Virus record (IMG/VR): IMGVR_UViG_3300035698_018317
Span: 124,001-188,000 of that record
Length of the DNA: 64,000 nucleotides
Reading direction: 5' to 3' (one strand)
Positions 1,017 through 31,141 of this stretch are shown piece by piece (within the stretch, counting starts at the first letter, position 1; every line of letters begins with the position of its first letter). The notes under the pieces are model-generated. The model made no database searches and had not been told where the DNA came from. It was given only the letters and a program-made list of their open reading frames with translations. A program made the position numbers and the translations under genes.

Positions 1017-1703
1017 TTAACGATACATATTGTCCGGTATAAATCCTCTACTATCATCGAATGTGAATTTCTTATTACTTTCATAGCCGCCACAATCTTT
1101 CAGTGTGGGGATAAGAAATCTCTTGTTGGTAGGTCTATATCGCTCTTGAGAGAACTTCTCAACGGCTGTTTCAAATTTATGGTAGAATTTTCCCATTTTA
1201 ATAGATGTAATGTGATGAGGAAGATTCAAACACAAAATCTGGTTCTGAATGGTTTTTAATACCTCAGACGCTCTAACCTTTTTACGCCCTTTACCAACTT
1301 TACTAAAGTCAATAAACCACAAGAAAGAATCAGGGTCATACGTAAAAACAGGATTTTGAATTCCTGCGTCCCAATGACTATCAATAATATCCGTTATTTC
1401 AGATAGCCAAAGATTACGTTTTACTACAGAAACGTATTTTGCGTAATAATAATAAGCAAAGACGCTTCTGAAACTCATAATCAAGATATGCTTGTTTGCT
1501 TTCGTGTGCATATTATGACGGAGACAGAATGGACAATAGAAACGTTGGCCTGATAAACGCTCACACCACTTCCTTATCATAGGCAGCATTCCTACTTGTT
1601 TGCCACAAAAGCAACAAGAGTAATGAATGTGTTCTGACAATTCATCGGACTCGTTTTCTATTTCTTGTAATTGTATATTTTGACGGTCTATGGTTGTGCT
1701 CAT
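1017..1703 (-). CDS. Hypothetical protein with N-terminal Zn-finger (CCFC...CPFC)
   Basis: ORF track; two Cys pairs. Confidence 0.7.
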   Translation of the reverse strand: MSTTIDRQNIQLQEIENESDELSEHIHYSCCFCGKQVGMLPMIRKWCERLSGQRFYCPFCLRHNMHTKANKHILIMSFRSVFAYYYYAKYVSVVKRNLWLSEITDIIDSHWDAGIQNPVFTYDPDSFLWFIDFSKVGKGRKKVRASEVLKTIQNQILCLNLPHHITSIKMGKFYHKFETAVEKFSQERYRPTNKRFLIPTLKDCGGYESNKKFTFDDSRGFIPDNMYR

Positions 1704-1783
1704 TTTTTACACCAAAAAAAAATAAGTTTTTGTTCTACGCTCTCTATATAAGTTTGAACTATAGTTAGCAGTAGAGGATAATT

Positions 1784-2005
1784 ATGAAAACATTCTATCA
1801 ATGGGCTGAAGAAAATAAAATAGAGCTTCCCGTAATAACGACTGACGGTGAGGATGCCACGAGCGAAAACAGAGTCAGGACTGGTTATAGTGCAAACTAT
1901 CCACCTGCCTATGTTGCTGCTCAATATCCTCATCATTACTTCAATCCTGCCAAGGCCACAGCAGACCTTGATGCGGAACAAATGAAGAAAAAAGATAAGA
2001 AGTAA
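1784..2005 (+). CDS. Small putative head-internal protein (MKTFYQWAEE; Lys-rich C-terminus)
   Basis: GAGG SD; N-terminus resembles T4 capsid-targeting sequence. Confidence 0.65.
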   Translation: MKTFYQWAEENKIELPVITTDGEDATSENRVRTGYSANYPPAYVAAQYPHHYFNPAKATADLDAEQMKKKDKK

Positions 2006-2030
2006 GCTCTAAGAATATAAACTTCTAGAC

Positions 2031-2065
2031 AACAAGCCTGCATTTTGCGGGCTTGTTTTGTTTCT
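2031..2065. terminator. Intrinsic terminator between convergent genes
   Basis: AACAAGCCTGCA-TTT-TGCGGGCTTGTT followed by T-rich tract. Confidence 0.75.
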
Positions 2066-2067
2066 TT

Positions 2068-2493
2068 TTACGGGTTACCACCTATAGCGTTACCGCCCAT
2101 AGTTTGGGGGTCAGCTTTATCAATTCTACTCTTTTGGTCTTTCCTTGTAAGGCTTGAGTGCTTCTTTTGAGAGTTTTTAACCCGTTCCCAATATCCCCAG
2201 TTATCAGGGGTCGTGGGGCTATTAACAATCATTCCCGGTGCTCTGCGATGGTATTTTTGAATTATCTGTTCTATTCGCTCGGCAGTTAGCTTACTTTCTT
2301 TCCGAATAGCAGCTAAACTTCGCCATTCATATTTTTTATGTCTAGCTAAGGCTTTGAAAAAGCGTGACTCTTCATCACCTTCTGGCGTCCCTTGAGGGAA
2401 TACATTTGTCCATCGTGGCGGCGAATTTGTGAAATTTCCTAACATTATTACTCCATTATTACTACATAAAAGTATCTGGTTTATTTGTGCCAT
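2068..2493 (-). CDS. Hypothetical protein
   Basis: ORF track. Confidence 0.65.
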   Translation of the reverse strand: MAQINQILLCSNNGVIMLGNFTNSPPRWTNVFPQGTPEGDEESRFFKALARHKKYEWRSLAAIRKESKLTAERIEQIIQKYHRRAPGMIVNSPTTPDNWGYWERVKNSQKKHSSLTRKDQKSRIDKADPQTMGGNAIGGNP

Positions 2494-2553
2494 CTGGTAT
2501 ATCTACCAAGGAGAGTATAGCAAACTTGACAAAGAATGTAAAGGGAAGAAAAG

Positions 2554-2997
2554 ATGAGACACAGAAAAAAACTGAATCGCTACGAAAGACTTGAAGAAAA
2601 CAAGAAAAAAGTTGCTCAGGCTTTGAGTGGCAAAGGCTTATATGTATATCGGAATAACACAAAAGGAGAGTTGAATCTTGCTAAACCCGCCGAGGGTGGG
2701 CAAAAATTCGTCCAGCCGGGATGTGAGTTTACAGGTGATGATTACTTTATGTTTATGATAAAAGAAACGCACGAGGCAACATTAGTACGGACGATTGAAC
2801 AACCAAAGGAGATAATTATGGAGCAAAAATTAATAGTTGACCAGCCTGATTGTATTACAACAGAGGGGAAAGTTGAACATGTTATAGTTCAGCCGAAAGA
2901 CAAACCGCTTAATGAAGAAACCCCTGAATCGAATATTGGAGAAGATATTCTTCTTGTTGATGATGCCATGGATGGAATTGAAATTATCCTAGAATAG
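2554..2997 (+). CDS. Hypothetical protein
   Basis: ORF track; followed by terminator. Confidence 0.7.
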   Translation: MRHRKKLNRYERLEENKKKVAQALSGKGLYVYRNNTKGELNLAKPAEGGQKFVQPGCEFTGDDYFMFMIKETHEATLVRTIEQPKEIIMEQKLIVDQPDCITTEGKVEHVIVQPKDKPLNEETPESNIGEDILLVDDAMDGIEIILE

Positions 2998-3047
2998 AAT
3001 TTTAGGAAACAGGTTTTTCCTGTTGGTATTTAACATTTTAGCACTTA

Positions 3048-3080
3048 GAACCCGAGCATATACGCTTGGGTTCTTTTTTT
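3048..3080 (+). terminator. Intrinsic terminator
   Basis: AGAACCCGAGC-ATATAC-GCTTGGGTTCT then T-run. Confidence 0.8.
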
Positions 3081-3129
3081 AGCTTTACAACTAAGTGAGT
3101 TGACCTACAATAAATTTGTACAAAGTGGA

Positions 3130-3158
3130 TTGACCCTGTGCGAAAGTTTTGTTATTAT
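3130..3158 (+). promoter_or_regulatory. sigma70-type early promoter
   Basis: TTGACC-17 nt-TATTAT with TGn extended -10. Confidence 0.65.
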
Positions 3159-3214
3159 ACGAGCCAGTGGAATAATCCACAGCAGAAATAACCAGTAGAG
3201 AAAGGGTAGTAAAA

Positions 3215-3691
3215 ATGAAGGCACTCATTAAAGAAGGCAAACTAATAGGTACGTGTAGTGATGAAGACGCTGTTACGGCACTGGCTGATGGAACGGCAGA
3301 TTCAATACTAACTGTAGACCCCGCAGAAGTCGCCCAATTGTCAGGACGCCCTCTGACTCTCGGCCAAAGACTTCAAAGTAAAATCAACAGTATTGGTCGT
3401 GACTTAGATGAGAGTGCGACAGAACTTGTAAAAAAAGCACCGGGATTATGTGGTGCGGCAAAAGATAAAGTACTATCTTTCGCTGCGACAATTAAAAATA
3501 AAGGCGACGAAGCTTTGGCCCAGTTGCGTGTAGTTGCTCATGAACTGACGGCTCCTGAAGCTGAAGTCGAAGCTCCCGCTGAAGTTGAAGAAGCTCCTGT
3601 TGTTGAAGCTCCTGTTGAAGCACCCGCCGAAGAAGCTCCTGCCGCTGTTGAAGCGGTCGAAGTTGTAGAAGAGGAAATCCCCACAGAATGA
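3215..3691 (+). CDS. Hypothetical protein with acidic Ala/Glu/Pro-rich tail
   Basis: ORF track; overlaps next gene (ATGA). Confidence 0.75.
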   Translation: MKALIKEGKLIGTCSDEDAVTALADGTADSILTVDPAEVAQLSGRPLTLGQRLQSKINSIGRDLDESATELVKKAPGLCGAAKDKVLSFAATIKNKGDEALAQLRVVAHELTAPEAEVEAPAEVEEAPVVEAPVEAPAEEAPAAVEAVEVVEEEIPTE

Positions 3692-5031
3692 GTACATTAG
3701 TAGTAGAAGTTTGTAAAGTTAAGTCGGTAAGACCGCATCCAAATGCGGACAGATTGGCTATAGCTACGGTGAAAGCTTGGGAAACCTGCATTCAGTATGA
3801 CCCCGATACTAAGACAGCAGCGTTCAAGCCCGGAGAAAAGTGTATCTATTTCCCACCTGATTGCATTCTTCCTCCAGCACTAGCGAATAGTCCACATCAA
3901 GTATGCAAAACCAAAAATTGTAAAAATTACAATGTAGTTAAAAGTAAAGATTACAAAAATGGAATGTGCATATCTTGTGGGTTAACGATTAAGTTTATGG
4001 ATGTAACTCCGGGTAGACTCGGCGTAATGTCCTATTGTGCTGAATTGCCGAAACAAGCTGATGGAATTCGTAGCGAGGGTGGCCGTGTAAAAGCCACACG
4101 TTTGCGTGGTCGCCCTTCCTACGGGTTTATCATGAAGATTGATGAATCTAAGGGAGATGACCCATCTTGGAAAGTGGGTCAGGATGTAAAGGCTCATTTC
4201 AAAGTAAAGAAATGGGAACCACCTGAGAAGTCCACTGATGGAGATACAGCTACTCCTAATCCTCGTTTCCATAAATATACTGACATAGAAAATTACAATA
4301 ACTTTCCTGAAATCCTTACAGAAGGGGAAGAAGTAATTTTCACAGAAAAGATTCATGGAAAAAACTGTCGATTAGGTATGGTCTTAGATACGAATGAAAA
4401 AGGTGAAGCTGTATGGACGCCCATGTGCGGAAGTCATGCAGTAAGACGAAAGAAACATAGTCTCAAAAAAATCAAAAGAACGTTCTTGAAATCTGTGTTG
4501 GATTCTTTGAAATATGGAATAAGATTCAGAAAGCCTCCCAAATACACTATTGGCCCGATTTCAGAATTTTGGGGTTATATGACTCCAAAAATCGAAAAAA
4601 TGCTGGTTTGGTTAAGGGATGATTATGAGTGGGGAGAACCTATTTCCAGTATAATCCTGTTTGGAGAAATCTACGGGAAAGGCGTTCAAGATATGACCTA
4701 TGGCCACGCAAAACGTGGACTTAGATGTTTTGATATTGCTGTAAATAGGAAATACGTTAATTTTGAATTGAAAGAAAAATTCCTTAAGCAGTTTGAAGTA
4801 GAAATGGTTCCGATACTTTATCGTGGGCCGTTTACCAGAGAAATTCTTCAAAAACACGTCGATGGACCAACCACGATGTGTGCAAAGACATTGGCAGGGA
4901 AATTCTCTGGACGTGAAGGTGTGGTAATCACGCCTGTCAAAGAACGCCATAATCCTCAAGTAGGACGTGTTATTTTTAAGGCAATCTCCGCTGATTACCT
5001 TGCAAGAAAAAACCCCACTGACGGTCACTAA
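3688..5031 (+). CDS. ATP-dependent RNA ligase (Rnl2/DRB0094-like)
   Basis: N-terminal HPNADRL module; nucleotidyltransferase motifs TEKIHG, FGEIYG, FDI, REGVVI, KAISADYL. Confidence 0.9.
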   Translation: MSTLVVEVCKVKSVRPHPNADRLAIATVKAWETCIQYDPDTKTAAFKPGEKCIYFPPDCILPPALANSPHQVCKTKNCKNYNVVKSKDYKNGMCISCGLTIKFMDVTPGRLGVMSYCAELPKQADGIRSEGGRVKATRLRGRPSYGFIMKIDESKGDDPSWKVGQDVKAHFKVKKWEPPEKSTDGDTATPNPRFHKYTDIENYNNFPEILTEGEEVIFTEKIHGKNCRLGMVLDTNEKGEAVWTPMCGSHAVRRKKHSLKKIKRTFLKSVLDSLKYGIRFRKPPKYTIGPISEFWGYMTPKIEKMLVWLRDDYEWGEPISSIILFGEIYGKGVQDMTYGHAKRGLRCFDIAVNRKYVNFELKEKFLKQFEVEMVPILYRGPFTREILQKHVDGPTTMCAKTLAGKFSGREGVVITPVKERHNPQVGRVIFKAISADYLARKNPTDGH

Positions 5032-19622: not shown

Positions 19623-22007
19623 ATGGCAATTTTAAGAGGATTTCCGCCATCGAACACAATCAGTCCTTCTGTTCGAATCACTGAAAAAGATTTGAGCTTT
19701 GTAGCAGCAGAAGATTCGTTCCATCGTGCTGGTTTGGTGGGTTTCGCAAGTAAGGGACCAATCAATATTCCAACAGCGGTGCGAACTTCGAGAGAATTAC
19801 ATACCGTATTCGGTTGGCCGCATCCTGAAGTAGGCGACCCCTACATGATTTATGCAGCAGAGCAATATCTTCTTATTGCCAACGAACTGTGGATAGTAAG
19901 AGTAGCTGAGACTGATTTGGTTAATGATGAAGTGGCACAGGTCGCAGAAGTGTCAGTCCCAATTTCGGGCACTGCTGTAATTATACAGTCTGAAGATGTT
20001 GGACCGTATAGTTTCACGGCACCGGGATTCTTCAGATGGAGAATTAACGGTACATTATCAACTAAGACATTAGTAGTAGCCGAAGCTGCAACAGTAGCTT
20101 CTCCAGTTACCTTAACTGTTGCTGAATTGGTAGAAGATTTAAACGACCAACTTGATACACCTGAAGATGAGAACCTTGAAATGAATTTCGATGGAATTTA
20201 TTTCGTGGAAGACGCAACTACTAGTAAGTTACAGATTTATAGCACGTATACTTATGGACCAAATGCTTCAATAGAGTTGGTCTCAGTTTTGGCTTCGATT
20301 TATGGTGGTGCAGCAGCCTCAGTAGGCTTGGGAACAGGAATGACTCAGGCAACCACTACTGGTGCGGCTCAAAGATATCCGGTTGATTCCGCTACCGCCC
20401 TTGGAATCTATGATTTCACAGGTTTAACGGACATGTCGCTGCAAGTAGTAGTAGATGGAACTGATAATGTATTAATTGACAATACGATACAAATAATCGA
20501 CCTTGAAAACTTAGAAGGTCTCAGTAATACAATTGGCGAAGTTGTTATCGAAATTAATGATTATATCGACAACAACCTTCCGGGCGGCTTCGATGCCGTA
20601 GCAATTGGAAACAACTTGGCATTCCGTACCGAACACTATGGTCGTGATGCACAAATATTAGTTAAAACAGTAGCATCATATTCCGTATTTGGATTTACTG
20701 GAGTTACGGCAGCGGGAACAAGCCCAGAAAGTACAACGGGCGTTGCAAATGACCATGCTGGAATTATAACGGGTGCGGCTGCTACAGGAACATGCTTCAC
20801 TTTAATGGCTGATAGTGCAGGAATCGAAGGTAATAACACTCAGGTGATAATTGCCAATGATGACTCCTCGAATACTTTCACTATGGAAGTATATACGGCA
20901 GGCGTCCAAGTTGAATCATGGGGACAACTAACCAAGAATCAAGCCAGCAGATATTATGTGGAAACATTCTTGGCCTTAGTTTCAGATTACATCCGTGTAG
21001 ACGACAATACAGCAACAACGGCATCGCCTGCCGATAGTGCTCTTGGAAGTGCTTACGTGTTGACTGGTGGTTCAGACGGTATTCCGTCAGACCCGGATGA
21101 CCAAGATGATTTGCTTATTGGTAATGAAGTTGGGTTCACAGGGCTATATGCTTTGTCGGAGCCAGAACAAATTGATATTGACCTTATTGCCGTTCCGGGG
21201 CACTCATCGACATCGGTTATTATAGCCATGCTGTTTGTTTGCCAGAGTTTAAGAATGGACTGTTTGGCCATTGTTGACCCGCCATTTGGCCTCACTGTGA
21301 ATGAAATAATCCAATGGCAGAACGGTACTCACCCACTGAATACAACAAGATTTGATTCAGATTTCGGTGCTTTGTACTGGCCTTGGGTTAAAATCGCTGA
21401 TACCTATAATGGTGTCAACGTTTGGGTGCCGCCGTCTGGTTCAGTTATGGCAGTATATGCCAGAAGTGATAACTTCGCCGCTCCTTGGTATGCCCCTGCT
21501 GGCACCACGAGAGGCGTTGTACCAGCCATTACAGACGTGTTTAGCCGTCCTACGTTAGAAGAGAGAGATGCGATGTATGGGAATCGTAATGCGATTAACC
21601 CAATCGTTCAATTCTCGGATGCAGAAGGCTTCTTAGTTTGGGGTCAAAAGACACTCCAAAGAACACCTACAGCATTGGACAGAGTAAATGTCAGAAGATT
21701 GATGTTTGTGGTTGAGAAAAGAATTCGTCAAGCGTCACGCAGGTTGCTGTTTGACCCGCATGATGATGAGTTCCGTCAACAGTTCTCAAGAATAGCAGAT
21801 ACGATTCTTAGAGAAATCCAAGTAGGACGAGGAATCAGCGCATACATAATTAAGGCAGACGAAGAATTGAACACGCCTGATGTTATCGACAGAAATGAAT
21901 TCCGTGCAAGAATTGGTATTCAGCCACTCAGAGCAGTTGAATTTATCTTTATAGAATTCAGCATCCATAGAACTGGAAGCTTTGATGAAGGTGTAGATAA
22001 TTTCTAA
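19623..22007 (+). CDS. gp18: Contractile tail sheath protein
   Basis: SPSVRITEKDLS, GFASKGP, YWPWVK, PWYAPAG, WGQKTL, RVNVRRL. Confidence 0.97.
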   Translation: MAILRGFPPSNTISPSVRITEKDLSFVAAEDSFHRAGLVGFASKGPINIPTAVRTSRELHTVFGWPHPEVGDPYMIYAAEQYLLIANELWIVRVAETDLVNDEVAQVAEVSVPISGTAVIIQSEDVGPYSFTAPGFFRWRINGTLSTKTLVVAEAATVASPVTLTVAELVEDLNDQLDTPEDENLEMNFDGIYFVEDATTSKLQIYSTYTYGPNASIELVSVLASIYGGAAASVGLGTGMTQATTTGAAQRYPVDSATALGIYDFTGLTDMSLQVVVDGTDNVLIDNTIQIIDLENLEGLSNTIGEVVIEINDYIDNNLPGGFDAVAIGNNLAFRTEHYGRDAQILVKTVASYSVFGFTGVTAAGTSPESTTGVANDHAGIITGAAATGTCFTLMADSAGIEGNNTQVIIANDDSSNTFTMEVYTAGVQVESWGQLTKNQASRYYVETFLALVSDYIRVDDNTATTASPADSALGSAYVLTGGSDGIPSDPDDQDDLLIGNEVGFTGLYALSEPEQIDIDLIAVPGHSSTSVIIAMLFVCQSLRMDCLAIVDPPFGLTVNEIIQWQNGTHPLNTTRFDSDFGALYWPWVKIADTYNGVNVWVPPSGSVMAVYARSDNFAAPWYAPAGTTRGVVPAITDVFSRPTLEERDAMYGNRNAINPIVQFSDAEGFLVWGQKTLQRTPTALDRVNVRRLMFVVEKRIRQASRRLLFDPHDDEFRQQFSRIADTILREIQVGRGISAYIIKADEELNTPDVIDRNEFRARIGIQPLRAVEFIFIEFSIHRTGSFDEGVDNF

Positions 22008-22028
22008 AAACACTGGAGGACAACAATA

Positions 22029-22598
22029 GTGGTAGATATGGCTCTTGGAAAACTTGGTAGTCAAGACTTGATATTCAAACGCAAGTTTCGATGGACGTTT
22101 AAGATTGAAGAAACATGCAAAGGAAATATCCCAGAGCACTACGTGAAAGTTGCGGCTAGGCCCAATTTGACAGTTGAAGAAACCGAAGTCAACTTCCTTA
22201 ACGCAAAAGGATGGATTCCGGGTAAGGCATCTTGGGAAACTATTACGGTAACTTACTACGATGTAGGTGGAAAAGGCGATGTTGACAGTGAGGGGATTTC
22301 CAGTTTATGGGGATGGCTTGCTACAATATATAACTTTTCAAAAGGCGGAAAGTCTGAACAGGGAGCCAATAGAAGCAACTACGCAGGTAAGGGGGTTTTA
22401 ACCTTATATGATGGTTGTGGAAAAGGCATCGAAGAATGGACGTTAGAAGATATGTGGCCGCAGGCTGTTAATTTCGGAGAATTAGATTACTCTAGTTCGG
22501 AGGAATGTACTATAGAATTGACTTTAAGATATTCAATAGTTCAATACACTAACCAATGTGGTAACAAAGTTGACCCGTGCGAATGCTCGGGATGTTAA
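22029..22598 (+). CDS. gp19: Tail tube protein 1 (gp19-like)
   Basis: KRKFRW, AARP, GKASWETITVTYYD, WPQAVNFGELDYS. Confidence 0.9.
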   Translation: MVDMALGKLGSQDLIFKRKFRWTFKIEETCKGNIPEHYVKVAARPNLTVEETEVNFLNAKGWIPGKASWETITVTYYDVGGKGDVDSEGISSLWGWLATIYNFSKGGKSEQGANRSNYAGKGVLTLYDGCGKGIEEWTLEDMWPQAVNFGELDYSSSEECTIELTLRYSIVQYTNQCGNKVDPCECSGC

Positions 22599-22622
22599 AA
22601 ATAGACTCAAGGAGATATAAAT

Positions 22623-23273
22623 ATGGCACTACAACAAATGGGATTGGGTAAACTAGGGGATAGAAGCCTTGTTTTTAAAAGAAAATTTCGTTGGACATTT
22701 AAAGTCGAAGACGTATGTTCATCGGATGAAAGGCAAACATCTGTTCCAGATAGTTTTGTAAAGCTAGCCGCTAGGCCCAACTTAACAATTGAAGAAACAG
22801 AGATAAATAGACTTAACGCAAAGGGTTGGATTCCCGGTAAGGCAGCTTGGGAAACTATTACGGTAACGTACTACGATGTAGCAGATAGAGATAATCTCGC
22901 TTTGTGGACATGGTTAGCTTCCGTATATGACTTTACAGACCCAATTAATTTAAAAATGGGGTCTAGAAGAAATGACTATGCTGCTAAGGGTGTTTTGAAG
23001 TTATATGATGGCTGTGGTGCTGTTATAGAACAATGGATACTTGAGGACTTATGGCCACAAGCAATTAATTTTGGCGAGTTAGATTATTCTAGCTCAGAGG
23101 AATCTAATATCGAATTGACTCTTAGATACTCACAAGTCAAATACAAGAGCTTCTGCCCCGGTGCTGAAATTACTGGCTGCTGCACTGAGTGCGATTCTGG
23201 TGCTTCTTCCACTGGTAGTGGAACAGGCGGAACGAATACCGGCAATGTTTCAAGTGGCGTAGTAATTGTTTAA
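22623..23273 (+). CDS. gp19: Tail tube protein 2
   Basis: Close paralogue of the preceding gene. Confidence 0.88.
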   Translation: MALQQMGLGKLGDRSLVFKRKFRWTFKVEDVCSSDERQTSVPDSFVKLAARPNLTIEETEINRLNAKGWIPGKAAWETITVTYYDVADRDNLALWTWLASVYDFTDPINLKMGSRRNDYAAKGVLKLYDGCGAVIEQWILEDLWPQAINFGELDYSSSEESNIELTLRYSQVKYKSFCPGAEITGCCTECDSGASSTGSGTGGTNTGNVSSGVVIV

Positions 23274-23295
23274 TAATCCCTTTGTTAAATTACTT

Positions 23296-23327
23296 AAAAA
23301 GTCCCTCTATTCTTAGGGGGACTTTTT
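23296..23327 (+). terminator. Intrinsic terminator
   Basis: AAAAAGTCCCT...GGGGGACTTTTT hairpin. Confidence 0.65.
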
Positions 23328-23347
23328 CGGTAATTAAGGAGTAAATT

Positions 23348-23863
23348 ATGGCTAGACAAATGGGATTTGATTTCGGTCTTGAGAGTAAAGAGACTTGTTT
23401 CAAAAGAAAATTTCGTTGGCTTCTGGTGATAGAAGGTATATCCGCTGATAAAAATAGTGTAAATTCATTACCCCCTCTGAAAAGTGCAAGACCAAATATT
23501 TCTTTCAAAGAAATGGAAGTTAAGCATTTAGTTGAAAATATTTATTATCCAGCAAGACCTGATTGGAAACCAATAACATTAGTTCTATATGATATCAAGA
23601 GAGATGACCACCCTGTATTTGATTGGATTCAAAAAATTTATGATGTGAGCAGAGAAGGTGATTGGTTCCCTTCTGGCGATAATGAATTCAAAAAAGAAGC
23701 TAGATTAGAGCTATATGATGGGTGTGGTAACATTATAGAAACTTGGAAATACGAAAACGCATGGCCACAAACCGTTGAATTCGGAGAGTTGGCCATGGGC
23801 GATTCCGCATATGTCACCGCTGATATAACTTTAAGGTATGATAGAGCCTTTATAGAAGCCTAA
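23348..23863 (+). CDS. Tail tube-like protein 3
   Basis: KRKFRW, SARP, WKPITLVLYD, WPQTVEFGEL, ITLRYD. Confidence 0.85.
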   Translation: MARQMGFDFGLESKETCFKRKFRWLLVIEGISADKNSVNSLPPLKSARPNISFKEMEVKHLVENIYYPARPDWKPITLVLYDIKRDDHPVFDWIQKIYDVSREGDWFPSGDNEFKKEARLELYDGCGNIIETWKYENAWPQTVEFGELAMGDSAYVTADITLRYDRAFIEA

Positions 23864-27644: not shown

Positions 27645-28130
27645 ATGGAAGAAATTAAAACAAAAGAAAAATGGACTTTCGAGATTGTAGACGTAAGCCC
27701 TGAACTTAAAGTAACTGTATTGGAATTGCCTAGCATAGAATATGAAGAAGAGGAATTATATTTCCAAGGCAAAAAGGTCTATAAGCCAATATTTTCAACT
27801 ACTCGTTGGATACCCTTTACAGTATCATTTGCTGAGTATTATGATATGGACATAAATGGTCTTTTTGAATGGATAAGTACATTCAACATGGGAATCGGCG
27901 ACGGAACAACTACTGGGGCAATAACCAGAACAGGCATCTTAAAATGCTCTAATGGCCAAGTTTGGGAAATAGAAAATATATGGCCTCAGTCAATCAATAC
28001 TTTAGCTGACTATTCTAACTCAGAGCCTTTAAAAATTGAATTAACATTTAGTTATTCACGGGCGAGAGTTGATTATTCTAATACCGAACCACAAAACAAT
28101 AAAATATCACTTAATTGGGATAACAAATAG
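27645..28130 (+). CDS. Tail tube-fold protein 4 (tube initiator-like)
   Basis: LPSIE, WIPFTVSF, IWPQSI, IELTFSY. Confidence 0.7.
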   Translation: MEEIKTKEKWTFEIVDVSPELKVTVLELPSIEYEEEELYFQGKKVYKPIFSTTRWIPFTVSFAEYYDMDINGLFEWISTFNMGIGDGTTTGAITRTGILKCSNGQVWEIENIWPQSINTLADYSNSEPLKIELTFSYSRARVDYSNTEPQNNKISLNWDNK

Positions 28131-28139
28131 GAGAAAAAA

Positions 28140-29300
28140 ATGACAGAAGAAGTATATCAACCAAAGAGAGTGCCTATCAATCCAGACATTGTAGATACAC
28201 CAGAAATCCCTCAGAGCGAAGCCCTTGAGCCTACTGTAGAAACAATACGTCCTCCTCAAGCAGATGTAGAGCAGCCAGTGATACGTCCAGCAATGGCAGA
28301 AACAGGTATGGAGCTTAAAGGAAATATCCCTGTACAGTTCCAGAACGCCTTGTCAAATGCAAAAAAGGCAAAAAAAGAACAAGAGATTGTTGCCCCTGTC
28401 CCTGCACCTGACGCTGCTCCTGCTCCAGCGGTGGCACCACCAGCGGTATCGCAAGAAGTTCAGCCAAGTGTTCCGCCCGGAACTGTTAGGACTCTTGAAC
28501 AATTAATTCAAGGAATCCAAACTCGTTCTACTCTTTATGAAGAAATTACCCTTCCATCAAAAGGAAGGTTTTATGACGGCGATGATGGGCCACAAGATGG
28601 TGTAATCCGCATTCGACCGATGACAGGTGAAGAAGAACAGATTTTGGCTACCCCTAGATTTGTCAAAAAGGGTCAGGCAATTAATATGATATTTGACAGA
28701 TGTATGCAAGATGGTTTTCAGTCAGAAAGATTTATCACACCAGATAGAACATATATGTTGATTTATCTACGTGGTATTTCTTATACACCATCATATGACG
28801 TAGAAGTTAAATGCCCACAGTGTGACAGGAAATTTGCGACAGTCATAGATTTAAATGATTTATATGTTGAATCTTGCCCAGAAAATTTCTCAGCCACTAG
28901 TTTGAAGGATTCTCTTCCAACGACTGGTTATAACTTCACCTATCGTCTTTCGACTGGAACTGATGAACAAAGAGTTCAAGAGCATAGAGATAGAAAACTT
29001 AGAGGTGGATTTGAAACAAGCGGGCAAGCTGATGATACCCTGCTATTCCGCACAGCAATTATGGTAGAAGAAATAGAAGGGCTTACAGACAAAGACGAAC
29101 TACAAGCCCTGTTAAGAAAATTACCTATTAATGATGTGGCTTATTTAAGAACGGCTGTCAATGAGCCTCCATTTGGTGTAGACACCAAGGTTGAGATTCC
29201 TTGTCCGGGTTGTTTAGCAGATTTTGAAATAGAACTTCCCCTTGAATCAAATTTTTTCTTCCCAAAGGGCCGCAGGAAGACGCCGAACATGCGAGCGTAG
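28140..29300 (+). CDS. gp26: Baseplate hub/tail assembly chaperone, T4 gp26-like
   Basis: ITLPSKG, IRPMTGEEEQIL, DRTYMLIYLRGISY, CPQC and CPGC, PFGVDT. Confidence 0.8.
   Translation: MTEEVYQPKRVPINPDIVDTPEIPQSEALEPTVETIRPPQADVEQPVIRPAMAETGMELKGNIPVQFQNALSNAKKAKKEQEIVAPVPAPDAAPAPAVAPPAVSQEVQPSVPPGTVRTLEQLIQGIQTRSTLYEEITLPSKGRFYDGDDGPQDGVIRIRPMTGEEEQILATPRFVKKGQAINMIFDRCMQDGFQSERFITPDRTYMLIYLRGISYTPSYDVEVKCPQCDRKFATVIDLNDLYVESCPENFSATSLKDSLPTTGYNFTYRLSTGTDEQRVQEHRDRKLRGGFETSGQADDTLLFRTAIMVEEIEGLTDKDELQALLRKLPINDVAYLRTAVNEPPFGVDTKVEIPCPGCLADFEIELPLESNFFFPKGRRKTPNMRA
29252..29267 (+). promoter_or_regulatory. Tandem -1 ribosomal slippery sites T TTT TTC and C CCA AAG
   Basis: Both heptamers are in X XXY YYZ phase with the gp26-like frame; -1 frame is open from 29246 into the 29315 ORF. 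Confidence 0.7.
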
Positions 29301-29314
29301 AACTTTGGAAAAAT

Positions 29315-29485
29315 ATGATGGAAGAAATATTTTTCTTCCAATATCATTTGCATATGAGCAGAGCGGAAGCCTTCCATATGCCTGTGCATGAAAGAAAATG
29401 GTTGATTGATAGATTTATCGAACAAAAGCAAAAAGAAAATTCAGCCATGGAAGATTCAAGAAGAAGAGCAAAAAGAAAAACTTAA
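29315..29485 (+). CDS. gp51: gp51-like hub assembly protein / frameshift extension (missed by ORF track)
   Basis: MMEEIFFFQYHLHMSRAEAFHMPVHERKWLIDRFIEQKQKEN. Confidence 0.75.
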   Translation: MMEEIFFFQYHLHMSRAEAFHMPVHERKWLIDRFIEQKQKENSAMEDSRRRAKRKT

Positions 29486-29518: not shown

Positions 29519-30256
29519 GTGGCTACAAAAGAAAGATATCAAAATCCAGTTGTTGGAGATAGTGTAAGATTAAAGCTATTTTCATTTAGGTCAAATAACA
29601 GAACGAATTTTAATTCTGTAGACAAAGTAGAAATATACTTCTTAGACCCTGTGGAAGTAACTGAAGAAAATCCAGAGGGTAGAAGATTAGTAGACACTCT
29701 AACAGGTGCTTCTATTGTTAATGTTGAAACAGGTCTATATGAAGTTACGGTAGCTCTGGAAGATACGAAATATACAATAGGAGATTATGTAGATGTGTGG
29801 TACGCCTACATAGAAGCAAATGATGACCTTTCTACTGTAGAGAATACATGGAAGATTTATCCTGATTTATTCTATACAAGTCCTCTTCCGATTGTATATG
29901 ATTTTTCGTTTGCATTTAGACCTAATAAGCTAAGACTTGGTTCCAAACAATATCTTATCATAGACATAGTTCCTAATGTAAGAAATGCTTCGGATTTAGC
30001 AAGATACTATGAAAATCTAGCTATTGTTTCTCCTTTGAAAATATCTATAACACAAGTCTGCGGTGAGTGTTTGCCAGCAGAGGAAGATTTAAGAGTAATT
30101 GCTGAAGAAGAGAATGTAGAATTCCGAGAAAAAGGAAGAGGATATTATTTCTTGGATACAGAAGACTGGACAGAAGGATTGTATGATGTCTGGTTTACTA
30201 TGGAGTTTGGTGGAAACACATATATTTCTAGTAAACAACAACTTCAAATATATTAA
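29519..30256 (+). CDS. Virion protein with two Ig-like beta domains
   Basis: GLYEVTV, GDYVDVW, GLYDVWF patterns; GTG start. Confidence 0.6.
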   Translation: MATKERYQNPVVGDSVRLKLFSFRSNNRTNFNSVDKVEIYFLDPVEVTEENPEGRRLVDTLTGASIVNVETGLYEVTVALEDTKYTIGDYVDVWYAYIEANDDLSTVENTWKIYPDLFYTSPLPIVYDFSFAFRPNKLRLGSKQYLIIDIVPNVRNASDLARYYENLAIVSPLKISITQVCGECLPAEEDLRVIAEEENVEFREKGRGYYFLDTEDWTEGLYDVWFTMEFGGNTYISSKQQLQIY

Positions 30257-30328
30257 ACGCAATACAATTGGTAAAAAAGACAACATTTTAAATGTTGTCT
30301 TTTTTTTCCCAAAACCATATATATCTTT

Positions 30329-31141
30329 ATGGGAGCAACAACAACAGAGGGGTCCGGCGCTGGTTCAGCGGCAGGTGCATTAAGAGGTCTTACTTTAGAT
30401 AATTTACATAGAGTACTTGCCTCTGATGGTAAAAGTCCCTCTACTACAAATGACGGTTTACAATTCGTAAAAGAAATATTAAAAACAAGGACTGTTTCTG
30501 GTACTTCAATAACAGCCGGAAGTGATGATGAACTTATTATTATAACGGCTACTAGCGATGTAACCATTTCGCTTCCTGACCCAACAACCTTTACTGGTCA
30601 GGGATTTATTATAAAAAGAGCCAATAGTGCTACTAGTTCACTTACTTTATTACCAGTCGCCGGAAATATAGAGGGTGCTTCTAGTTGGCAAACTATACAT
30701 TCTAGAATTGGGATTCAAGTAATATCCACAGGAACAGAATGGGCAATTACTTCATGGTATCATCCTGATGAAAGTAGTGAATCGTCCGCTTATAAAGCGA
30801 TTATGTCTTCTGAGCTAAATTTCAAAACTATCGCAGATTATACACTGTATGTTGTTCCATCCGATAAAATATTTTTAATTGATTCGATGGAAATAATTAC
30901 TACCGCCATCACGGGTGCCGCCACTGCACCTACTATAAGATTCGGAAATAGTGTAGATAGAGATAAGAATTGGGGACCAACAATAACCACATCTAATACT
31001 TTTAATTTTAGACATGTTGTTAGCAATCCGCAACATGGTGCTGTAGCTGGAACGTCTATCTCGGGGGGGATAACTATTGGTAGTACAGCAACTACTCATT
31101 CTGGATACTTTGTAATCAGAGGCACTTTGCTTGATGTTTAA
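30329..31141 (+). CDS. Fibre-like virion protein
   Basis: DVTISLPDP...FIIKRA motif; N-terminus shared with 50350 gene. Confidence 0.65.
   Translation: MGATTTEGSGAGSAAGALRGLTLDNLHRVLASDGKSPSTTNDGLQFVKEILKTRTVSGTSITAGSDDELIIITATSDVTISLPDPTTFTGQGFIIKRANSATSSLTLLPVAGNIEGASSWQTIHSRIGIQVISTGTEWAITSWYHPDESSESSAYKAIMSSELNFKTIADYTLYVVPSDKIFLIDSMEIITTAITGAATAPTIRFGNSVDRDKNWGPTITTSNTFNFRHVVSNPQHGAVAGTSISGGITIGSTATTHSGYFVIRGTLLDV

Follow-up and report, generated by a model that had tools for sequence, protein, structure and literature searches.

Comparative evidence for a -1 ribosomal frameshift yielding a long form of a T4 gp26-type putative tail-hub assembly chaperone in a huge phage

Results

A phased slippery heptamer and an open -1 frame at the end of a gp26/gp51-family gene

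Comparative sequence analysis strongly supports that a huge phage makes a short and a long version of its T4 gp26-type protein, an inferred tail-hub assembly chaperone, from one gene by a conserved -1 ribosomal slip, which T4 appears to achieve with two separate genes (26 and 51). In the absence of protein or ribosome data, frameshifting itself is inferred. The window analysed here is a stretch of 64,000 nucleotides (positions 124,001 to 188,000 of IMG/VR virus record IMGVR_UViG_3300035698_018317, a 225-kb record estimated to be 44% complete, whose nearest public relative is a 595-kb uncultured phage). The features of the locus, all on the + strand, are as follows.

27645..28130 (+): tube-like gene immediately upstream of ORF1, in the same orientation (phrog_4542 'tail tube protein' at 1e-5).
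28140..29300 (+): ORF1, the short (0-frame) product, 386 aa, with a variable Pro/Ala-rich N-terminal region of about 130 aa and a basic C-terminal tail (PKGRRKTPNMRA).
29243..29245 (+): TGA, the last stop in the -1 frame before the slip site.
29252..29258 (+): conserved slippery heptamer T_TTT_TTC (Asn371 third base, Phe372, Phe373).
29258..29314 (+): -1-frame linker (LPKGPQEDAEHASVELWKN), read only after the slip; its last 7 residues form the start of helix 1 of the modelled tail domain, and GPQEDAEHASVELWK is an example of a linker peptide upstream of the Met of ORF2.
29261..29267 (+): second phased heptamer C_CCA_AAG, lineage-specific, which could act as an extra slip site in this phage.
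29294..29482 (+): tail domain as modelled (63 aa), a helical hairpin with helices 2-19, 23-28 and 31-62.
29298..29300 (+): ORF1 stop codon TAG.
29315..29485 (+): ORF2 as a mechanical ORF (56 aa plus TAA), the core of the C-terminal tail domain of the long product.

We first wanted to confirm the arrangement itself. ORF1 ends with LPLESNFFFPKGRRKTPNMRA before its stop, and in its frame the codons are AAT TTT TTC TTC CCA AAG, so that T_TTT_TTC and C_CCA_AAG are both phased as X_XXY_YYZ. The -1 frame is closed by the TGA and is then open to the TAA at 29483-85, reading FFLPKGPQEDAEHASVELWKNMMEEIFFFQYHLH. ORF1 matches PF12322 (T4_baseplate, the T4 gp26/gp51 family) at 2.4e-16, with 60.6 bits against a cut-off of 24.5, over residues 143-373, the match ending exactly at the FFF motif, and it matches phrog_150 'baseplate hub' at 8e-20. 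A scan of the phage's own genome record found this single PF12322 locus. ORF2 matches only an unnamed PHROG (phrog_20255, 1e-4). A Shine-Dalgarno motif (taggag) precedes the ATG of ORF1, and the sheath gene and the tube genes also have one, whereas no Shine-Dalgarno-like motif was found before the ATG of ORF2 (29315). To determine whether such an arrangement could be due to chance, we looked at the 82 mechanical ORFs of at least 100 aa in the window. Only ORF1 and one spurious antisense ORF combine a phased heptamer near the end with 60 or more open -1 codons. Moreover, contigs from three independent DNA runs cross the T-run without an indel. The observation made in the original prediction is therefore confirmed.

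The slip site is conserved at the nucleotide level

Next, we looked for the same arrangement in related phages. For this, we scanned IMG/VR and JGI metagenomes and obtained 90 loci with ORF1 relatives at 42-78% identity, plus one identical contig. They represent 76 distinct junctions (47-78% protein identity). In every locus, the ORF2 homologue lies in the -1 frame, and that frame is open from the FFF motif to its end. The heptamer TTTTTTC is present in 74 of 76 junctions, and the remaining two have AAC TTT TTT TTC, which is the same heptamer one codon later. To determine whether this conservation reflects more than the protein sequence, we compared the third positions of conserved two-fold codons. 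At 22 other conserved Phe, Tyr, Asn, Asp or Cys columns of the same gene, the fraction of T at the third position ranges from 0.28 to 0.70, while at N371, F372, F373 and F374 it is 0.97, 1.00, 0.03 and 0.01. The third bases of N371 and F372 affect no protein in either frame, and only the slip site explains why they are fixed. Contrarily, C_CCA_AAG, proposed in the original prediction as a second slippery site, occurs in only 5 of 76 and was rejected as the main site. The junction peptide at the conserved site is therefore NFFLPKGPQ and not NFFFPKGPQ, although a slip at C_CCA_AAG in this phage would give the latter.

We also looked for a stimulatory RNA structure downstream of the heptamer. Folding of the 75 nt after the heptamer in the 76 loci gave a mean z of -0.84 against shuffles, and 45-nt windows compared with native in-gene windows gave a z of -0.31. 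No common hairpin or pseudoknot emerged, and the CCC...GGG hairpin found in some loci starts right at the heptamer, too close to act. The site therefore looks heptamer-only, and its efficiency may be low.

The linker upstream of ORF2 is translated in the -1 frame

To define whether the stretch between the two ORFs is coding, the junctions were aligned on the start of the conserved ORF2 domain. The preceding 18 nt, which lie downstream of the ORF1 stop in most loci, show -1-frame codon periodicity (entropy 1.25 / 0.59 / 1.52 at codon positions 1/2/3) and encode a conserved motif S-[LI]-x-L-W-x-x-L-[MA]-E-E, in which Leu codons vary synonymously. The ORF1 stop lies 23 nt before the EE of this motif in 60 of 75 junctions. 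It should be noted that the 0-frame tail after the heptamer is also conserved (basic, ending QA before the stop), so part of the conservation in the overlap reflects the short form. The residue that is Met in the window is Met in only 40 of 75 junctions, Ala in 26 and Leu in 6. Between the heptamer and the domain, 45 of the 76 junctions have an ATG, 13 have only a TTG or GTG (ordinary Leu or Val codons), and 18 have no start codon of any kind, meaning that 31 of 76 lack an ATG. Accordingly, gene callers give this ORF ragged or truncated N-termini. In addition, an AF2 model of the 63-aa tail (mean pLDDT 94.6; about 95 for helix 2-19) starts its first helix seven residues upstream of the window's ATG.

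A relative with two tandem genes as a natural control

A profile search of 1.8 billion cluster representatives found 573 relatives of the tail (E<=1e-3), nearly all of them small ORFs. Interestingly, one of them, P0091, is a 327-aa protein with the tail at its C-terminus. Its contig, L114 (a Logan SRR17828886 contig; L numbers are handles), carries two tandem PF12322 genes of the same clade (44-49% identity to ORF1). Copy 1 (371 aa) ends with GFFFPIAKRETEEK before its stop; its codons are GGG TTC TTT TTC, so the heptamer is gone, and its -1 frame is closed. Copy 2 (P0091) lacks the N-terminal extension and is an in-frame fusion reading ETGFFLPSPDSEKG...NLMEEQLFFLNHF, whose FFLP junction is exactly what a slip on T_TTT_TTC predicts. 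Where two genes supply the two forms, the synonymous constraint on the heptamer disappears, which locates the slip site and shows that both forms are wanted. In the AF2 model of P0091 (pLDDT 84), the junction sits at the border between the folded domain and a disordered linker. This model, of a close relative and not of the window protein itself, matches the SP-15 'baseplate hub subunit' at E 1.9e-16 (TM 0.63/0.82) and dozens of 'baseplate hub (assembly) proteins' in BFVD, while no solved structure was found to share the fold.

Tail domains in the -1 or +1 frame in more distant family members

Distant members of the family repeat this theme. XacN1 (GCT TTT TTT), Atu_ph07 (CAT TTT TTC) and PA5oct (AGT TTT TTC) have the same kind of heptamer (T_TTT_TTY) at the homologous C-terminal FF, followed by a -1-frame tail domain; in PA5oct, that frame has no Met at all and is unannotated. 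SP-15, LIS04, HSE3, GXN1, Mel-JY01, L003 and L014 have the tail domain in the +1 frame, open across the ORF1 end, and SP-15, LIS04 and Mel-JY01 have no ATG before the conserved part. All these tails align with that of the window. In SP-15, HSE3, LIS04 and Mel-JY01, the gene order is sheath, tube, gp26-like gene, small ORF, and then a tape-measure gene or a long unannotated ORF, which is the classical G/GT position. The window holds a sheath gene and three tandem tube paralogues at 19623-23863, in addition to the tube-like gene directly upstream of ORF1 (absent at this position in L001), but no tape-measure gene follows the locus, the next genes (29519-30256 and 30329-31141) not being recognisable tape measures.

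Discussion

Altogether, these results make it highly likely that most ribosomes terminate at the TAG at 29298 and make the 386-aa short form, while a minority slip back one base on U_UUU_UUC when the two tRNA-Phe in the P and A sites re-pair. Some may also slip on C_CCA_AAG in this phage. After the slip, the ribosome would read CTT CCC AAA GGG in the -1 frame, adding a flexible acidic linker and the 63-aa predicted helical-hairpin tail domain, to give a 448-aa long form with ESNFF followed by LPKGPQEDAEH at the junction. The comparison shows the slip site, the translated linker, the dependence of the tail domain on upstream translation in many relatives, and the existence of relatives that encode the two forms as two genes. 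The long form probably represents a few per cent of the product, as for heptamer-only sites such as lambda G/GT. By inference, the two forms act like lambda gpG and gpGT, or T4 gp26 and gp51: the shared PF12322 domain would hold the tape measure or hub, and the tail domain of the rare long form would recruit another tail part.

An alternative is that ORF2 is made only as a separate small protein, starting at ATG 29315/29318 by coupling or re-initiation after ORF1 terminates 14 nt upstream, the -1 relation and the heptamers being incidental. Indeed, the window and 41 of 76 relatives have an ATG directly before the EE of the domain, the ORF1 stop sits at a fixed short distance upstream, L001 has an overlapping TAATG, and some distant relatives (HSE3, L014, XacN1) carry a Met near the domain start. 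However, this is unlikely given the junctions without any canonical start, the conservation of the sequence upstream of the ATG as -1-frame protein forming part of the modelled helix 1, the fixed synonymous sites of the heptamer, the relaxation of this constraint in copy 1 of L114, and the lack of a Shine-Dalgarno motif. Since ORF2 in this phage has ATG ATG, some free ORF2 product cannot be excluded. It is also improbable, although judged without RNA reads, that RNA polymerase slips on the T-run (six T, eight in L012/L013) and inserts one extra U: six T is probably short for productive transcriptional slippage, and FFF could be encoded by TTT TTT TTT, giving a longer run, whereas the C bases of TTC TTC are kept in 74-75 of 76, which holds the run at exactly six in the X_XXY_YYZ phase. 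Finally, although homopolymers are error-prone and P0091 is called as a single fused ORF, a sequencing indel or a meaningless overlap is refuted in practice by the two-frame arrangement shared by 76 independent assemblies, by the three DNA runs, and by P0091 lying next to a second, short paralogue and encoding its junction with different codons (TTT TTC TTG CCA).

The conserved frameshift in tail-chaperone genes is a hallmark of long-tailed phages (Xu, Hendrix and Duda 2004, cited in PMC9024508), and T4-type phages have been the outlier. The chaperone idea is not new, since T4 gp26 and gp51 are listed as hub assembly chaperones (PMC3004832) and one GenBank record (Acinetobacter phage Octan) already names both 'tape measure protein assembly chaperone'. 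The frameshift link in this protein family is new as far as we could find, and none of the annotated records with a PF12322-type gene that we fetched marks a frameshift. Hundreds of small 'hypothetical' ORFs with ragged starts in huge-phage and jumbo-phage genomes are probably the second half of a recoded gene, which current records leave split or unannotated. Slightly more likely than not, the whole PF12322 family may be a second, unrelated lineage of tail or tape-measure chaperones that has to be made as a short and a long form, differing only by a small helical tail. Evolution would have solved this in three interchangeable ways: a -1 frameshift on U_UUU_UUY (this huge-phage clade, XacN1, Atu_ph07, PA5oct), a +1 frame change at the same C-terminal FF (SP-15, LIS04, Mel-JY01, HSE3, GXN1 and others), and gene duplication with an in-frame fusion (T4 genes 26 and 51; L114). 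T4 would then have its G and GT equivalents in gp26 and gp51, and the 'catalytic' role of gp51 would reside in its 45-aa tail.

Comparison with known systems

The analogy with the lambda gpG/gpGT tail assembly chaperones, made in the original prediction, holds in several respects. In both cases, a -1 slip on an in-phase heptamer near the end of a chaperone gene (inferred here) yields a short form and a rarer C-terminally extended form, no downstream structure is evident, as appears to be so for lambda, and in distant relatives the gene sits between the tube gene and a tape-measure gene or a long unannotated ORF. On the other hand, we found no sequence or fold relation to known tail assembly chaperones, with no chaperone family hit in Pfam, NCBIfam or PHROGs and no PDB fold match; the relation is one of inferred mechanism and role and not of demonstrable homology. 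The heptamer is U_UUU_UUC rather than G_GGA_AAG, the tape-measure gene is not adjacent in this window, and ORF2 has its own ATG in about half the clade.

The comparison with T4 calls for a refinement, since the original prediction took ORF2 as a gp51-like protein. T4 gp26 (208 aa) and gp51 (249 aa) both match PF12322 over residues 1 to about 205 (215.6 and 177.5 bits, respectively), so they are paralogues, and ORF2 is not a homologue of whole gp51. At most, it corresponds to the roughly 45-aa C-terminal extension (listed as PF28602) that gp51 has and gp26 lacks, NPDEIFTFYQINH...MIPAERGFVLKLIEKDKQ. Profile-profile comparison with hhalign always places the ORF2 family on gp51 residues about 196-249, collinearly, with the motifs EIFxF...P-x-ER...IE-K lining up, but with P between 0.009 and 0.047 only, and pairwise BLASTP finds nothing, so this similarity is suggestive and not proof. 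The original prediction also described the chaperones as 'still frameshift-linked', which implies a direction of evolution that was not tested here; L114 shows that a frameshift arrangement and a two-gene arrangement both occur within one clade. In architecture, gp26 is the domain alone and gp51 is the domain plus a helical C-terminal tail, so that ORF1, despite its extra N-terminal region of about 130 aa, corresponds to gp26 and the 448-aa transframe product to gp51, T4 using two divergently transcribed paralogous genes and no frameshift. This offers a plausible explanation for why T4 has two genes instead.

Genomic surroundings and sequence features of ORF1

We looked at the genes that surround ORF1, the gene of the gp26/gp51-family protein, and at features of its sequence. 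The features of the window are as follows.

19623-23863: a tail sheath gene followed by three tandem tail-tube paralogues (189, 216 and 171 aa)
27645-28130: a fourth, weaker tube-like gene, directly upstream of ORF1
28140-28530: N-terminal region of ORF1 (residues 1 to about 130)
28812-28823 and 29199-29210: the two Cys pairs of ORF1 (CPQC, CPGC)
29298-29300: the ORF1 stop
29519-30256: a 245-aa ORF of unknown function
about 30273-30308: an inverted repeat plus T-run
30253-30567 (- strand): a mechanical antisense ORF
30329-31141 (+ strand): a gene whose start is overlapped by the antisense ORF

The tube-like gene found directly upstream of ORF1 is missing at that position in the related locus L001. 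The 245-aa ORF is the conserved downstream neighbour (L001, 3693-4439; L114, the Logan SRR17828886 contig, 3502-4236). By eye, the inverted repeat plus T-run that follows this ORF looks like an intrinsic terminator closing the operon. The antisense ORF also has phased heptamers and a long open -1 frame, but it overlaps the start of the + strand gene and looks spurious.

The N-terminal region of ORF1 is Pro/Ala/Gln-rich and varies in length and sequence. It is absent from T4 gp26/gp51. The two Cys pairs of ORF1 look like a zinc ribbon, although they are replaced by non-Cys residues in the relatives L008 and L009 (DPDS, NPYT), so any metal site is not universal in the clade. At the other end of the gene, the ORF1 stop sits 23 nt before the EE of the tail domain in 60 of 75 junctions. 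This stop is usually TAG (52 of 75), and the short form usually ends in Q-A. The fixed position of the stop may reflect a dual-coding constraint with the -1-frame S-[LIV] codons. Finally, when the sequences of the tail domain alignment were compared with known families, 15 of 31 gave weak hits below cut-off to DUF6760 (best 4e-4) and 13 to Tma16.

Arrangement of the gene and its tail domain in relatives

Interestingly, L114 carries tandem PF12322 genes (1383-3484). Copy 1 is short, has lost the heptamer (GGG TTC TTT TTC) and has a closed -1 frame, while copy 2 (the protein P0091, 327 aa) carries the tail domain in frame with the junction FFLP. The N-terminal extension is present in copy 1 but is lacking in copy 2. 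In the GenBank record of Acinetobacter phage Octan (MT409116), although we found no open-access paper stating the basis for this, both gp26 and gp51 are annotated 'tape measure protein assembly chaperone'.

In another set of relatives, namely SP-15 (locus L002, 3240-3467), LIS04 (L107, 2180-2422), Mel-JY01 (L109, 2230-2461) and the loci L004, L106, L003 and L014, the tail domain is in the +1 frame, open across the ORF1 end. SP-15, LIS04 and Mel-JY01 have no ATG before the conserved part. The motifs at the FF are 'TTT C' or 'TTT TTT TGG', and this may be +1 (or -2) recoding in the same family. In contrast, the cultivated jumbo phages PA5oct (locus L112, about 2310-2543), Atu_ph07 (L110, about 2270-2513) and XacN1 (L108, about 2235-2486) have T_TTT_TTY at the C-terminal FF of their 'baseplate hub' gene and a -1-frame tail domain after it. 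In PA5oct, the -1 ORF has no Met and no annotation, while in Atu_ph07 the annotated small CDS starts inside the domain.
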